This document shows positions 38,890 through 54,296 of a DNA stretch of 64,000 nt, in pieces. The notes under the pieces were generated by a model. That model did not search any database, had not been told where the DNA came from, and saw nothing but the letters and a program-made list of their open reading frames with translations. This stretch comes from Octopus sinensis (lineage: Eukaryota): contig NC_043004.1 in assembly GCF_006345805.1 (NCBI RefSeq), positions 50,468,001 through 50,532,000 of the forward strand, in the 5' to 3' direction. Made by a program: the position numbers and the translations under genes. Position 1 is the first letter of the stretch. Every line of letters begins with the position of its first letter.

Positions 38890-39007
38890 TTAAGACACCT
38901 GGATGTTTCCATCACTGTCTGAATTTAAGCACCAAATTGATACAGCCCCTGTGGAACTTCCATCTTTGGAGTCGTAATCGCAAAATTCTTCAGAAAGAAT
39001 CTTCAAT
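38890..39007 (-). CDS. OvoA-C-like methyltransferase gene, probable terminal exon (R)LKILSEEFCDYDSKDGSSTGAVSIWCLNSDSDGNIQVS*
   Basis: tttttttactccatag acceptor; 118 nt, phase-compatible with exon 46461-46569; TAA at 38892-38890. Confidence 0.72.
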
Positions 39008-40715
39008 CTATGGAGTAAAAAAATTCACTTTTAAATATATATATATTTAAGTACATGTATATGAAAAATAATATAAGTAGTTCAGCAGAATATATCCATA
39101 GAATAAGCACCAGGCTTACAAAGAATATGTTCAGGGGTCGATTTCTTCAACTAAAAGTTGGTGCTTCAGTATGGCCACAGTCAAAATGACTGAAACAAGT
39201 AACAGAGTAAAAGAGTTATATACATATATATATATATATATATATATATATATATATATATATATATAATATATATATATAAACCTTACTTGGAAATGGA
39301 TGTGTGGTGTTTGATAATATAATAATATAAATAATATATATATATATATATATACTAGCAGTATTGCCCGGCTCGTGCGTTCTATGCACGCAAGAATTAA
39401 GCTAAACTTGGATGAAGTTCAATCAAAATTCAATTATATTGGTTTTAAAATCAAGCATTTAATGCCCTCTATTTTTGTGCTTATGTGTTCCATTTCCTCA
39501 GTAGGAAGTACATAGAAGCGTTTCATAAATTTTTGTTGATCAAATATTAATGGCTGAAAATATCTCTATAATAAGCTGTACCAGATGAAGGACCAAATTT
39601 GCTAAGTAAACTGTATTAAACACACACACACAGTTCTACACATATGCTTTGGTTTTTGAAAATGCAACATTGAACAAAGGCTATCCTAATATTTGAATGA
39701 AACCATTTCACTTTAATTTGTGGAACCAGTTGCTCCTGTATGATAAAACTTAATATTTATTTAATCAGTGAGATATTAGACTAAATCAATTGAAGATCAC
39801 ACAACAGACTCAGTAGTTGTCAGTTTGTATTCTGTCATTTGTAACTTCAACACAAGAGAGTCTCTTTTTCAAGTATGGACTTTATGAAATTTTACTCATC
39901 ATACATTGAAGGACAAATCTTTCAATTTACAATTTAATATAGTGGAGCATTTAGTATATGTGTATATATATATATATATATATATATATATATATATTTT
40001 ACCTATTGTATGCATTGTGTTATTTTTGTAATTTACTTAATCTTTACTTTTTAATTGTCATTTTGATTTTAAATTTTCTATGATATGTAATTTTCTGGAT
40101 GGTGTAATTTAATTATTCATTTTGAGTTGATAAAAGGTGGTTTTTTTCTAATGTTTTATGTATATGTATGTATATATAGTGGTATAAATATCAACACAAT
40201 TATTTCTCCTTCCTTTTTTTTCCTCTTCTCCTTTCTTCCCTTCTCCAAACTCACAGACACCCCCACACACATGCACACACACACAGACACACACACACAG
40301 ACACACACACACACACACACACACACACACACACACACCTCCACAAAAAAATCATAAAAAGAATTCTTCTTCTCTAAACCCCAAAAAAACCATTTGACCA
40401 TCCCTTATTAAACACACACACACACACACAATGAGAAAAAGAAATATAATTTATGGTCTACCTCCCTGCCACCACACACTCAATAACACTATGAATTGGT
40501 CAAAACTGAAATTCTTTTCCCCCAAGATCTTAGACACCCCCTTGGAGTAAGCATGCTGTCCAGCAGAGCAAAAAAATTATTTTCTGCTTCTTCTTCCCTC
40601 TCCCTTTCCCTCTTCTTCTTTAGCACTCATTCCAAATACAAACACACACACACACACACACACACACACACACACACACACACACACATGCTCTCTCTCT
40701 CTCTCACTTTCTCCT

Positions 40716-41092
40716 CGCAATGGCCCAGTGGTTAGGGCAGTGGACTCGCGGTTGTAGGATCGCGGTTTCGATTCCCCGACCGGGCGTTGTGAGTGTTTAT
40801 TGAGCGAAAACACCTAAAGCTCCATGAGGCTCCGGCAGGGGATGGTGGTGATCCCTGCTGTACTCTTTCACCACAACTTTCTCTCACTCTTACTTCCTGT
40901 TTCTGTTGTACCTGTATTTCAAAGGGCCGGCCTTGTCACTATCTGTGTCACGTTGAATATCCCCGAGAACTACGTTAAGGGTACACGTGTCTGTGGAGTG
41001 CTCAGCCATTTACATGTTAATTTCACGAGCAGGCTGTTCCGTTGATTGGATCAACCGGAACCCTCGTCGTCGGAACCGACGGAGTGCTTCCA
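40716..41092 (+). mobile_element. SINE family A
   Basis: near-identical to the other family A copies. Confidence 0.9.
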
Positions 41093-41384
41093 CCATCATT
41101 CCTCCCCACCACTACAAACTCAATACCACTATAAAATGGTCAAAACTTTTCACACAAGAACTTAGTTTGATTTGAAAACCTCAATAGAATGGGAGAAAGC
41201 TCTAATACATGATCTAAGTTATATGATGTATAAAAAATGTAATATATGAATAAACATCTGTAAATATAAACCATCCGATTTTCTGAGTACCTCATTTCTT
41301 CTAAGTTATATATATATATATATATATATATCTATGTACACATACACACACACACACACACATATATATATATATATATATATC

Positions 41385-42327
41385 ATCATCATCATCATCG
41401 TTTAACGTCCGTTTTCCATGCTAGCATGGGTTGGATGGTTTTGACTGGGGGCTGGTAACTAGATGGCTGCACCAGGCTCCAGTCTTGATCTGGCAGAGTT
41501 TCTACTGCTGGATGCCCTTCCTAACGCCAACCACTCCAAGAGTGTAGTGGGTGCTTTTTACATGCCACCAGCACGGGGGTCAGTCAGGCGGTACTGGCAA
41601 TGACCTCGCTCGAATCTTTTTACACGTGCCACTGACACAGGTGCCAGTGAAGTGACGTTGGTAATGATCATGCTCGAATGGTGCCCTTTTACATGCCACG
41701 GGTATGGAAGCCAGTTGGCTGCTCTGGCAACGATCACAATGATCACGCTCGGATGGTGTTCTAGGCACCCTACAAGCACAGGCATAAGTGCCAGTAAGGC
41801 GACGCTGGTAACGATCATACTCGAATAGCCTCTCTGTCAATGATCACACTAGTATGGTGCTCTTTGCACCCTGCTAGCACGGATGCCAGTGATCGAAATG
41901 ATTTTGATTTTGATTTGATTTTGATTTTGATTTCACTTGCTACAACAGGTCTTTGCAAGCAAAGTTTAGTGACCAAAGAAGGAAAAGCTATGCATAAGCG
42001 GGCTGGTTATGCTCCTGGCATAGGCCATGGGTTATGGTCTCATTTAGCTTGCCGGGTCTTCTCGAGCACAGCATATTTCCAAAGGTCTCGGTCGCTAGTC
42101 ATTTTCTTGGTGAGGCCTAATGTTCAAAGGTCATGCTTCACCACTTCATCCCAGGTCTTCCTGGGTCTACCTTTTCCACAGGTTCCCTCAACGGCTAGGG
42201 TATGGCACTTTTTCACACAGCTATCCTCATCCATTCTCACCAGATGACCATACCAAAGCGTCGTCTCTCTTGCACAAGTCCAACTTTTCTCTCAAGGTAC
42301 TCACACTCTGTTGAGTATGCACACTGG
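41385..42327 (-). mobile_element. RTE LINE 3' fragment (ORF2 C-terminus plus 3' UTR)
   Basis: reverse complement matches ~45230-46145. Confidence 0.85.
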
Positions 42328-42640
42328 ATATATATATATATGGATATATATATATAATATATAATATATATATATATATATGGATATATATATATATATA
42401 TATATATATATGGATATATATATATATATGTGTATATATATATTATATATATATATATGGACATATATATATGTATTATGTGGTAAGTAGCTTGCTTACC
42501 AACCACATGGTTTCGGGTTCAGTCCCACTGCATGGCACCTTGGGCAAGTGTCTTCTACTATAGCCTCAGGCTGACCAAAGCCTTGTGAGTGGATTTGGTT
42601 GACGGAAACTGAAAGAAGCCCATCGTATATATATATATAT

Positions 42641-52336: not shown

Positions 52337-52928
52337 TCATCTATAACAGCCAATAGCATCTGTTTGATAATAATTATTATTATTATTATTATTATTAAAG
52401 TTGTGAGCTGGTGAAATCATTACCGTGGTGAACAAAATGCTTAGTGGCATTTTGTCCAACTTGATGTTCTGAGTTCAAATTCCACCTAGATTGACTTTGT
52501 CTTTCATCCTTTTGGGGTTGACGAAATAAGTATCAGTTATGCATTGGGGTTGATGCATTCTATCAGCCTCCTCCCCCAAACTGTCAGGTCTTGTGCCTTT
52601 AGTAGAAAAGACTTTTATTATTATTATTATTATTATTATTATTGCTGACCTGATCCCTGTAAGCCTTACATGCTAGAAATGACATGTTCAGCTTCCAGTA
52701 CCTGGGTCCTAACCTACGTGTCTTATCTAGGTCAGCTGTACAGATTTCAAATTCATCCAGTGTCCTTGCATTACTGACTTGTGGAGTTATGTTGAACAGC
52801 TGTTATCATGTGTAGTACGGATCCGGCTATCCGCTGAGTCCATAGTGAAGATCGATCCGCCACCTTCCATTGGTCCAGAAGAGCAAGCAATTTTCCTCTG
52901 TCTGATAACAGTAGTATTAGAGGTTGTA

Positions 52929-53311
52929 TGGAGGCGCAATGGCCCAGTGGTTAGGGCAGCGGACTCGCGGTCGTAGGATCGCGGTTTCGATTCCCAGACC
53001 GGGCGTTGTGAATGTTTATTGAGTGAAAAACACCTAAAGCTCCATGAGGCTCCGGCAGGGATGGTGGTGATCCCTGCTGTACTCTTTCACCACAACTTTC
53101 TCTCACTCTTACTTCCTGTTTCTGTTGTACCTGTATTTCAAGGGGCCGGCCTTGTCACTCTCTGTGTCACGCTGAATATCCCCGAGAACTATGTTTAGGG
53201 TACACGTGTCTGTGGAGTGCTCAGCCACTTACACGTTAATTTCACGAGCTGGCTGTTCCATTGATCGGATCAACCGGAACCCTCATCGTAGTAACCGACG
53301 GAGTGCTTCCA
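52929..53311 (+). mobile_element. SINE family A
   Basis: 16-bp direct repeat attagaggttgtatgg (52916-52931 and 53317-53332). Confidence 0.92.
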
Positions 53312-53663
53312 TTCCCATTAGAGGTTGTATGGTGAACCAGGTTGAAAAGACGGAAGACAGACACTTTTCTCTTCGGCGAATCCCTCATCAACTTTTTCAA
53401 ATTTCACTTGGAAAGGAAGGTGAGGGTGGAGAGAGAAGTGCCACCTCTCGGTACATTTGCTACAAGATGGGTGAATGTAGTGAAAATGGCACGTGGGAGT
53501 GGACCTACTCTAATAATGCGCCTGTAGGCTAGTGAATTTGAGAGGGAGAAGGGTGCCCTTGCCAGATGCCCTTGAAGTGTTGAGTGGTTCAGGATTGGTG
53601 GGGTACCCGAGCCAACTCCAGGTGTTTACCCCCCACCCCACCCTAAAGGGGAACTTCCATTGC

Positions 53664-53866
53664 ACGTCGGGCGAAATGCGTAGCCGTATTTCGTCTGCCG
53701 TTATGTTTTGAGTTCAAATTCTGCCGAGGTCGACTTTGCCTTTCATCCTTTCGGGATCGATTAAATAAGTACCAGTAACGCACTGGAGTCGATATAATCG
53801 ACTTAATCCATTTGTCTGTCCTTGTTTGTCCCCTCTGTGTTTAGCCCCTTGTGGGTAGTAAAGAAA
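53664..53866 (+). mobile_element. SINE family D, 5'-truncated
   Basis: matches 63848-64000 and the reverse complement of 21372-21549. Confidence 0.82.
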
Positions 53867-54045
53867 TAGATATATTCTTTTGTTGGAAATACACTGTTAT
53901 TGTTTTTTGTACTAATTGCTTCTGTGTAAAATCCCCACTGTCTATGTCTACTGTATCGTCCCCTATATGTCAGCCCTAGTGGCCAATAAGTGAAATAATA
54001 ACAATAATTATTATCATTATTACCATCATGACCACTGTCACTCAC

Positions 54046-54296
54046 CTTTTTGAAAGTTTTTGACATATCGAATGCAACTCTACCAGAACTTGAACCGAGA
54101 ACTAATGCAGTCTTTGCCGGAATTGACCACACTTCCATCAAACTGAGACCTTTCTGAAGAGCAACAGCATCCAGACAATTTTTGAAGCCATATTCCTGTA
54201 GTAAGACATCTTCAATGACCAACGCATCACTGTACCTGTACTGGCTGTTTGCGCTTACATTTACCTGTGAATAACTTTTCACGGGACTTCCATTTT
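54046..54296 (-). CDS. OvoA-C-like methyltransferase exon (E)NGSPVK...YSDALVIEDVLLQEYG...KTALVLGSSSGRVAFDMSKTFKK
   Basis: T-rich tract plus tttactgaag acceptor, strong AAG/gtgagt donor; 251 nt open; joins in phase 0 to 50471 (an alternative acceptor at TCACAG inside the exon is possible). Confidence 0.85.

Follow-up and report, generated by a model that had tools for sequence, protein, structure and literature searches.

The minus strand of the window (the whole stretch of 64,000 nucleotides that was analyzed) very probably carries, from position 55535 to 38890, the last six coding exons of octopus OvoA, an ordinary and already known gene. The product would be the animal 5-histidylcysteine sulfoxide synthase with a C-terminal ovothiol-type methyltransferase domain. 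Of the six exons, the first is predicted to complete the iron-dependent sulfoxide-synthase (FGE-sulfatase) domain, and the other five would supply a linker and then a SAM methyltransferase of class I fold that belongs to the animal/holozoan OvoA subtype. The gene has already been reported from molluscs, Octopus bimaculoides among them, and the ovothiol field regards its three-domain layout as textbook knowledge. The discovery value is therefore small and the practical value lies in annotation, as this locus now has a defined set of six 3' exons with their phases and stop codon.

Exon organization and conserved intron positions

A preliminary description of this DNA had proposed five minus-strand exons with AG/GT borders and a single open frame of 232 aa, which was confirmed in the sequence. 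AG precedes each of these exons and GT follows each except the last, with GTGAGT, GTAAGA, GTAAGT, and GTAAGA as donors. Joined together, the five exons measure 701 nt and yield, in frame 2, 232 stop-free codons followed by TAA. The same description considered the 5' exons unidentifiable between 54300 and 64000 and thought that they probably lie beyond the window. One of them was nevertheless found at 55535 to 55370, while the remainder would indeed fall outside. The resulting six-exon set comprises 867 nt, equal to 288 codons plus the stop. At the local base composition, the chance of 288 open codons, upstream exon included, is approximately 3e-9. In addition, the ten internal splice sites, five donors and five acceptors, are canonical without exception, and the donors are of the strong GTAAG/GTGAG type. 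Based on the sequence and the conserved intron positions, the six exons are predicted to be spliced into one transcript.

The upstream exon (55370 to 55535; this and all following features lie on the minus strand) is 166 nt long and runs from phase 0 after tgCAG to phase 1 before GTAAGA. Its translation, NGSWISTGNEASRFARYAFRRHFFQHLGFRMVKSSHD..., corresponds to the final ~31 residues of the FGE-sulfatase (sulfoxide-synthase) domain and the start of the linker. It is followed by an exon of 251 nt (54046 to 54296, phase 1 to 0), encoding the linker, the N-terminal methyltransferase helices, and motif I (ALVLGSSSGR). The next exon (50328 to 50471, 144 nt, phase 0 to 0) extends from VLGIDYS, which contains the motif II acidic residue D144, through VIFKQ. 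Two shorter exons encode 26 residues (48353 to 48431, 79 nt, phase 0 to 1) and AWLYRLWELLKHDGLLVITSK... (46461 to 46569, 109 nt, phase 1 to 2). The terminal coding exon (38890 to 39007, 118 nt including TAA) ends in ...DYDSKDGSSTGAVSIW and a short tail. When relatives were used as tblastn queries, the upstream exon and the first four of the five previously proposed exons were matched separately, and no other part of the window was hit. For the last exon, support comes from the full-length alignment, which pairs DYDSKDGSS..AVSIW with FEDRDGES..VVTVW of Arion. It also matches the (V/I)(T/S)(V/I)W motif found at the C terminus of OvoA in animals and bacteria, and its intron position and phase are shared. 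Two AATAAA hexamers (38846 to 38876), located 13 and 38 nt past the stop and retrieved by pattern search, are candidate polyadenylation signals. The introns, 1.1 to 7.5 kb long, are packed with LINE fragments and SINE-like repeats.

Common intron positions show orthology with animal OvoA genes. The five introns and the upstream acceptor are identical in position and phase to those of OvoA from the bivalve Solemya velum, with exon lengths of 184/260/153/79/109/88 nt in Solemya versus 166/251/144/79/109/118 nt in the window. Intron positions and phases also coincide in the homolog of the stingray Hypanus sabinus, apart from one additional intron there. The stingray gene includes a 166-nt exon with the same phases as the upstream exon. 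The equivalent of the 251-nt exon is a single 260-nt exon of equal phases in Solemya and is split into 95 and 171 nt in the stingray. The boundaries of the 144-nt exon, between K and V.G.DY and between FKQ and LTW, recur in both species (153 nt in Solemya, 126 nt in the stingray). Identical length and phase are found for the 79-nt exon in both, and the 109-nt exon has a counterpart of 109 nt with identical phase in Solemya and of 112 nt in the stingray.

Link to the published octopus OvoA

The exon at 55535 to 55370 connects the methyltransferase part to the synthase domain. It shows 64.6% identity to residues 476 to 523 of Solemya OvoA (tblastn), matches positions 414 to 444 of the 444-position TIGR04344 ovoA_Nterm model (E=1.3e-11), and joins the exon starting at 54296 in frame and in the correct phase (phase 1). 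One product thus carries both the end of ovoA_Nterm and TIGR04345 ovoA_Cterm (E=9e-17). Moreover, its translation agrees at 37 of 37 residues with what Suppl. Fig. S1 of PMC4768315 prints for O. bimaculoides OvoA, down to the unusual N at the start. This protein is listed as KOF75235 (Castellano et al. 2016, Sci Rep 6:21506, PMC4768315). Judging from this identity, the gene in the window is most likely the published O. bimaculoides OvoA itself or its counterpart in a very close relative. What had been presented as a hidden gene is very probably the ordinary 3' end of OvoA. The source organism is a mollusc: an intronic reverse transcriptase has its closest matches among proteins of O. bimaculoides (83%) and O. 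vulgaris (78%), and the upstream exon agrees fully with the published O. bimaculoides OvoA.

No exon preceding 55535 to 55370 was detected within the 8.4 kb upstream (55536 to 64000), where tblastn up to E=20 gave noise only. The DinB-like domain (HX3HXE iron motif) and most of the FGE-sulfatase domain would be encoded beyond position 64000. In the printed O. bimaculoides row, the 23 columns ahead of the residues matching the upstream exon are gaps. Public octopus gene models may therefore be incomplete here, as the printed model lacks the preceding exon.

Homology and predicted fold of the methyltransferase domain

The preliminary assignment to an OvoA-type C-terminal methyltransferase holds at the level of profiles, sequences, and structures. 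In the profile search with the spliced peptide, TIGR04345 ovoA_Cterm was the best NCBIfam match (E=5e-17). Among 1.84 billion representatives, phmmer linked the sequence to residues 553 to 761 of the 764-residue Solemya velum OvoA (KAL5016943.1) with E=9e-27. With the six-exon product as query, an Arion vulgaris OvoA fragment was matched at 41% identity across 95% of the product (E=3e-60). The relatives come from named animals and holozoans, the nearest being mollusc OvoAs (Arion, 37 to 41%). The mean identity to other animals is 28%, compared to a range of 22 to 31% within the clade itself. The best PDB sequence matches are OvoM, OvsM, and OvoA. A search of the 64 kb of the window by tblastn with 60 relatives yielded no second methyltransferase exon set, which speaks against the suggested second tandem domain, and octopus OvoA looks to be single-copy. 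No cephalopod protein containing the window exons was present in a database of 5.8 billion proteins. The published octopus OvoA, which contains the upstream exon, is absent from this database as well.

AlphaFold modeled most of residues 72 to 285, the methyltransferase domain, with confidence (pLDDT >90). The top 11 Foldseek matches in the PDB are all OvoM, OvoA_Th2, or OvsM (E=1e-16 to 2e-14), and the next structural class begins around 1e-10. The predicted fold is that of a class I (Rossmann-type) SAM methyltransferase, closest to ovothiol methyltransferases. This fold is homologous to that of the bacterial OvoA C terminus, OvoM, and OvsM (TIGR04345; PDB 8KHQ, 9BXL, and 9BXH), with a Foldseek E value of 1e-16 and a TM score of ~0.69 normalized to the target. 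The window product shares with these bacterial proteins the G..xG loop, the motif II Asp, the F.Q motif, and conserved Arg and Gly residues. In bacterial OvoA, the methyltransferase domain is likewise fused after the same RRHFFQH.GFR synthase-domain end. However, identity to bacterial OvoA/OvoM is only 23 to 26%, and the window lacks the bacterial motif I Asp/Glu, Q(G/A)DAxNL, the ~25-residue insertion (YTWLEEFT..WLGG.R..GE), and the FVIRET.RKFQH segment.

Clade-wide motif differences and alternative readings

The preliminary description correctly recorded LVLGSSSG at motif I and LTWL in place of GDACNL, and regarded both as peculiar to this locus. They are instead common to animal and holozoan OvoA. 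F.Q[LF]TW is present in the window and in all ten animal or holozoan relatives in the alignment, and the acidic residue of motif I is missing from the window and from nine of these ten. The FKQLTW and motif I substitutions occur in Solemya, Patella, Arion, sharks and rays, Ciona, a sponge, a rotifer, and Pigoraptor. In contrast, all bacterial sequences in which the region is present have L[DE]xGC and Q[GA]DAxN. The earlier interpretation mistook clade-wide differences for locus-specific ones because the comparison was made with the bacterial consensus. The window displays the motifs of the clade: S.N.Q ahead of the domain, a motif I that lacks the acidic residue, F[KQ]Q[LF]TW, and AWL.RL.E. 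The bacterial-type L(D/E)xGC and Q(G/A)DAxN(L/I) motifs are absent (LVLGSS and QLTW in the window), as is the YTW..EEFT..WLGG insertion, which is missing from all animal sequences compared. Across the sequences aligned, the differences from the bacterial consensus are thus best described as synapomorphies of the animal/holozoan OvoA clade and should not be taken for locus-specific degeneration.

The remaining features of the domain follow the same pattern. Like the animal comparators (Solemya velum, the Arion vulgaris fragment, Hypanus sabinus LOC132401495, and Ciona intestinalis LOC100176451), the window product has the order synthase domain, linker with ~35 extra residues, and methyltransferase domain. 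It shares with them S.N.Q, F[KQ]QLTW, AWL.RLWE, and the terminal V(T/S)(V/I)W, together with the intron positions and phases and a subthreshold score on the bacterial ovoA_Cterm model. Identity to other animal OvoAs in the methyltransferase region is only 26 to 37%, which is normal for this fast-evolving domain. Among columns conserved at 75% or more in 16 animal-type sequences, 47 of 53 are kept, and the other six differ mildly (G1N, L133M, G147N, I150L, P192S, and P212T). The G123/G127 loop, D144, R148, F185, Q187, R208, and G227 are retained.

Two of the alternatives set this locus apart from a working OvoA gene. According to the preliminary description, the domain is a paralogous, possibly catalytically altered OvoA-like methyltransferase (a tandem domain or pseudo-enzyme), specific to this locus and distinct from canonical OvoA. 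Apart from the departures from the bacterial consensus in motif I and GDACNL, this view could draw on an ovoA_Cterm score of 61.5 to 62.3 bits, below the curated cutoff of 170 bits. However, animal controls score equally low (Solemya, 40.1; Ciona, 60.8; Arion, 59.9; Hypanus, 61.7 bits) compared to 323.7 bits for a bacterial control protein, even though the full-length Solemya and Ciona proteins pass ovoA_Nterm with 633 and 570 bits. Together with the substitutions shared by the animal and holozoan OvoAs examined, the in-phase junction to the synthase-domain exon, the single methyltransferase exon set, the intron positions of orthologous OvoA genes, and the upstream exon identical to published octopus OvoA, this makes a paralog highly improbable, and the idea is already largely refuted. 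It is just as hard to credit a decaying or unused 3' remnant, with octopus OvoA transcripts ending earlier and the methyltransferase exons unexpressed. In its favor, the introns are long and transposon-loaded, and unmethylated 5-thiolhistidine has been reported from octopus eggs (Rossi et al. 1985, cited by PMC4768315). No Octopus protein with the region is found in the database, though Octopus proteins are present, but this carries no information, since even the published octopus OvoA is absent there. Against decay stand the 288 codons without stop or frameshift, the ten canonical splice signals with strong donors, the 47 clade-conserved residues with only mild differences elsewhere, and the confidently predicted fold. 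The sequence data gave no sign of octopus-specific decay of the domain.

A third alternative concerns function rather than gene identity. Bacterial OvoA and OvoM catalyze N-pi methylation of 5-thiohistidine with SAM. By analogy with this bacterial enzymology, the octopus domain would perform the last step of ovothiol A synthesis. No in vitro assay on the C-terminal domain of an animal OvoA was found in PMC4768315, PMC8433421, PMC8623360, or PMC10696552. The animal-type domain, in all animals or in octopus, might instead no longer methylate 5-thiohistidine and act as a structural or dimerization module or on another substrate. This would fit the clade-wide changes at two usual SAM contacts (the acidic residue of motif I and the D in 'DA') and the missing ~25-residue stretch conserved in bacterial proteins, which resembles, by position only, the dimer-contact beta-hairpin of OvoA_Th2 (PMC10696552). 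Most animal relatives also lack a precomputed Pfam methyltransferase match (P0069 has one), whereas bacterial proteins have three or more and the unicellular holozoan Pigoraptor keeps them. Furthermore, accumulation of unmethylated 5-thiolhistidine has been reported for octopus alone among animals, in its eggs, again by the citation of Rossi et al. in PMC4768315. On the other hand, the domain retains the glycine loop, the aspartate of motif II, and several invariant residues in common with the bacterial enzymes, and the closest structures are ovothiol methyltransferases. Sea urchins make N-methylated ovothiol A, and their OvoA is described with the three-domain layout (PMC4768315); the literature treats the domain as a methyltransferase (PMC8433421, PMC8623360). 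Loss of methylation seems unlikely, and so does the related notion that, in octopus, this distinct animal/holozoan subtype of the OvoA C terminus is not the N-pi methyltransferase but a structural module or an enzyme with another substrate.

For annotation of the octopus OvoA gene, it is relevant that Pfam methyltransferase models match the window product only below their gathering scores. More generally, the animal/holozoan OvoA clade is missed both by these thresholds and by the NCBI bacterial ovoA_Cterm cutoff. Unlike other animal OvoAs, the window product has a C-terminal tail of ~13 residues past the VSIW motif.

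Exon structure at the 3′ end of octopus OvoA

The last six exons of a single gene lie on the minus strand of the window; they encode the end of a sulfoxide-synthase domain, followed by a linker and a methyltransferase fold of the ovothiol type. The gene is the known octopus OvoA (5-histidylcysteine sulfoxide synthase), of which the window contains the 3′ portion. Five of these exons (54296-54046, 50471-50328, 48431-48353, 46569-46461, and 39007-38890) were already recognized in the preliminary description, and their splice borders are confirmed: AG precedes each segment and GT follows the first four (GTGAGT, GTAAGA, GTAAGT, and GTAAGA). 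As described, the joined frame measures 701 nt and is read in frame 2 through 232 stop-free codons, followed by TAA.

In OvoA relatives, the matched region is directly preceded by the peptide ...STGDEASRFARFAFRRHFFQHLGFR..., which is also present in the translated upstream minus strand of the window. A tblastn comparison located this peptide at approximately 55532-55407, with 64.6% identity to Solemya velum residues 476-523. Reading of the DNA delimits a missed exon of 166 nt at 55535-55370 (minus strand), starting in phase 0 after tgCAG and ending with one split-codon base, followed by GTAAGA. Its end phase is exactly the one required by exon 54296-54046. Joined, the six exons comprise 867 nt (288 codons plus stop) and are separated by introns of, in exon order, 1,073, 3,574, 1,896, 1,783, and 7,453 nt.

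The earlier statement that the 5′ exons are not identifiable in 54300-64000 and probably lie beyond the window thus no longer applies to exon 55535-55370, but it stands for the remaining ones. Full-length animal OvoAs compared to 55536-64000 at very lax thresholds returned only noise in the search for further OvoA exons, placing the rest of the gene outside the window. The exon expected before 55535 (..GNVWEW.EDHFNG..YDDFS.P.FDG.HN.ILG) was not found within 8.4 kb upstream; either this intron exceeds 8.4 kb, or the exon is absent from the assembly and gene model. Similarly, the printed OvoA row of Octopus bimaculoides, listed as KOF75235 by Castellano et al. (2016, PMC4768315), has 23 gap columns just before this exon, followed by NGSWISTGNEASRFARYAFRRHFFQHLGFRMVKSSHD (Supplementary Figure S1 in PMC4768315). 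The translation of exon 55535-55370 is identical to this published sequence at 37/37 positions, including an unusual N where other animals carry G. This gene had therefore been described and named before, rather than being hidden as initially proposed.

For comparison, the exon chains of the Solemya velum OvoA locus and of a homolog in the stingray Hypanus sabinus were solved to reproduce the annotated proteins exactly. The last exons of the window measure 166, 251, 144, 79, and 109 nt (end phases 1, 0, 0, 1, and 2), followed by 118 nt plus stop. Those of Solemya measure 184, 260, 153, 79, and 109 nt with the same end phases, followed by 88 nt plus stop, and those of the stingray 166, 95, 171, 126, 79, and 112 nt (end phases 1, 0, 0, 0, 1, and 2), followed by 127 nt plus stop. 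All three share identical boundary peptides (..ILG|G.SW, ..K|V.G.DY, ..F.Q|LTW, and ..|AWL), and the sole difference in the stingray is one additional intron within the counterpart of exon 54296-54046. Position and phase are conserved with the bivalve and vertebrate OvoA genes for 5/5 window introns and for the upstream acceptor, which argues for the exon model as well as for orthology, independently of transcript data.

Homology and predicted fold of the product

When queried against Pfam, the five-exon peptide gave generic methyltransferase matches, all below threshold. The top NCBIfam family is TIGR04345, the ovoA_Cterm model (putative 4-mercaptohistidine N1-methyltransferase; E = 4.8e-17, 62 bits versus a cutoff of 170), and the nearest sequences of solved structure are OvoM, OvsM, and OvoA_Th2. 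No match to this peptide emerged among 5.8 billion proteins in a word-indexed search, and 60 relatives were recovered when 1.84 billion cluster representatives were searched exhaustively with HMMER. The top relative is a 764-amino-acid (aa) protein matched over residues 553-761 (E = 9e-27, 31% identity). The named relatives have the size and architecture of OvoA and are of animal or holozoan origin (Solemya velum, Patella vulgata, Ephydatia muelleri, Seison nebaliae, Ciona intestinalis, and Pigoraptor). The OvoA-type identity originally assigned to the domain is thus correct.

Besides ovoA_Cterm, the six-exon product matches the final 31 positions of the ovoA_Nterm model, TIGR04344 (E = 1.3e-11). 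In a large protein database, its matches include an Arion vulgaris OvoA fragment (E = 3e-60, 41% identity, 95% coverage), homologs from sharks and rays, and numerous bacterial proteins named putative 4-mercaptohistidine N1-methyltransferase. No Octopus OvoA protein was matched in this database; this carries no weight, since the published octopus OvoA, containing exon 55535-55370, was not found there either.

An AlphaFold2 model of the six-exon product, built with a 40-sequence alignment, has a mean pLDDT of 80.8, with most of the methyltransferase domain (approximately residues 72-285) above 90. The predicted model displays the strand-helix alternation typical of a class I methyltransferase and a linker that appears disordered. 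In a Foldseek search against the PDB, ranks 1 to 11 are occupied by OvoM, OvoA_Th2, and OvsM (E = 1e-16 to 2e-14), with target-normalized TM scores of approximately 0.65 to 0.71 for the stand-alone enzymes. Nicotinamide N-methyltransferase is among the later-ranked matches, which begin at approximately 1e-10.

Properties of the animal-type methyltransferase domain

The domain was compared in an alignment of 17 animal/holozoan-type and three bacterial sequences and in a separate one of 40 sequences. After strand 4, animal/holozoan OvoAs, including that of the window, read F.Q[LF]TW, whereas bacterial OvoA/OvoM read Q[GA]DAxN[LI]. The acidic residue of motif I, present in bacteria (L[DE]xGC), is absent from the window sequence and from 9/10 animal/holozoan relatives. 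The animal/holozoan sequences, again with the window, carry approximately 35 extra linker residues before the domain that bacteria lack, and are devoid of the bacterial stretch YTWLEEFT..WLGG.R..GE. Common to both groups are the G123/G127 loop, D144, R148, F185, Q187, R208, and G227 (numbered in the six-exon product). Among columns conserved in at least 75% of the 16 other animal-type sequences, the window sequence retains 47 of 53, and its six departures are mild (G1N, L133M, G147N, I150L, P192S, and P212T). Over the methyltransferase region, its mean identity to other animals is 28.4% (highest, Arion, 37%), and the clade's own range is 21.6 to 30.8%.

Scores against ovoA_Cterm follow the same division: 40 bits for Solemya, 61 for Ciona, 60 for Arion, 62 for the stingray, and 61.5 for the window, versus 324 for a bacterial protein. 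As a control, the full-length OvoAs of Solemya (633 bits) and Ciona (570 bits) easily pass the ovoA_Nterm cutoff of 400. Since the low C-terminal scores and the motifs recur across animal OvoAs, they are properties of the clade and not of this locus.

The bacterial stretch of approximately 25 residues, the motif I acidic residue, and Q(G/A)DAxN are missing clade-wide from animal/holozoan C-terminal domains (P0001-P0023 and P0064-P0071, versus bacterial P0072-P0150). These domains score under the NCBIfam curated cutoff, and most animal relatives of the six-exon product have no precomputed Pfam methyltransferase match. Consequently, the methyltransferase domain in animal OvoA tends to escape standard domain annotation.

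Animal OvoA has been described as a fusion of DinB, FGE-sulfatase, and SAM-methyltransferase domains (PMC8433421, PMC8623360, PMC4768315), with the final N-pi methylation of 5-thiohistidine assigned to the C-terminal domain (PMC8433421, PMC8623360); the biochemical proof in this literature concerns bacterial enzymes (PMC8433421, PMC10696552). In the octopus, OvoA would accordingly join cysteine to C5 of histidine, a lyase would then free 5-thiohistidine, and the C-terminal domain would move a methyl group from SAM onto the imidazole N-pi, giving ovothiol A.

There is a slim chance that this domain does not serve as the methyltransferase, be it in octopus alone or across animals. What favors this reading is that the animal subtype is altered at two motifs that usually contact SAM in class I methyltransferases. 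In addition, the stretch that the subtype lacks resembles, by position, the dimer-contact hairpin of the bacterial OvoA_Th2 (PMC10696552), and unmethylated 5-thiolhistidine is reported from octopus eggs, according to a citation in PMC4768315. Whether animal-type domains are active methyltransferases concerns the entire clade, and no decay particular to octopus is indicated by the window sequence. A decaying remnant or pseudogene is also unlikely, given the canonical splice sites, the conserved residues retained, and an intact 288-codon frame with a chance probability of approximately 3e-9. The preliminary description had favored a paralogous, possibly catalytically altered domain, either a second tandem copy or a pseudo-enzyme. 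This reading fails against the in-phase junction with synthase exon 55535-55370, the single methyltransferase copy within the window, the intron pattern of orthologous OvoA genes, and the clade-wide nature of the motif changes.

Repeats and neighboring genes

The OvoA introns and 3′ flank are occupied by a SINE-like dispersed repeat of approximately 400 nt with TA/CA microsatellite ends. At least seven copies, 82 to 98% identical to each other, are present in both orientations (37607-37985, 42474-42664, 46192-46397, 46996-47415, 54400-54822, 60576-60999, and 62453-62854). A second repeat family is found at 40716-41092, 50649-50855, 51962-52114, and 52935-53312. A long, imperfect TA-rich microsatellite (48432-48910), translating as YIYIYI..., abuts the acceptor of exon 48431-48353 and merges with this exon in a simple ORF list to give a spurious 182-aa ORF (48330-48878).

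LINE/non-LTR retrotransposon fragments lie on the plus strand, antisense to OvoA, both in the last OvoA intron (42879-43346 and 44301-44993) and upstream of exon 55535 (56486-57088 and 57435-58028). Their domains include Exo_endo_phos_2, RVT_1 with a PHD finger, and zf-RVT; the RVT_1/PHD ORF in the last intron has its closest proteins in O. bimaculoides (83% identity) and O. vulgaris (78%), which marks the host genus as Octopus. An ORF at 59774-60298 (minus strand) has no Pfam match and merely resembles the C-terminal tail of a retrotransposon ORF2.

A Lys/Glu-rich open segment of 226 aa (26887-27564, minus strand) is preceded by a CCHC-like knuckle (DCEIRGHMKTQC) and contains a 219-aa ATG ORF (26884-27543). 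This ORF has no Pfam match and, appended to the reverse transcriptase (RT) query in a protein search, had RT matches alone among those listed. The segment may be a gag/ORF1-like retroelement remnant. Scanning the window for tRNAs and Rfam families gave no hits.

The OvoA stop is followed, approximately 13 kb further along the minus strand, by a 117-aa ORF devoid of introns (ATG at 25947, TGA end at 25594) that encodes a homolog of RPA3, the 14-kDa subunit of replication protein A, and may represent either the functional gene or a retrocopy. It matches Pfam Rep_fac-A_3 with 59.8 bits (cutoff, 23.5) over model positions 4 to 105 of 105, and human RPA14 (1l1o_A) over query residues 8 to 117 (E = 2.7e-16). 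The remainder of 1-38889 contains transposon-like fragments only.
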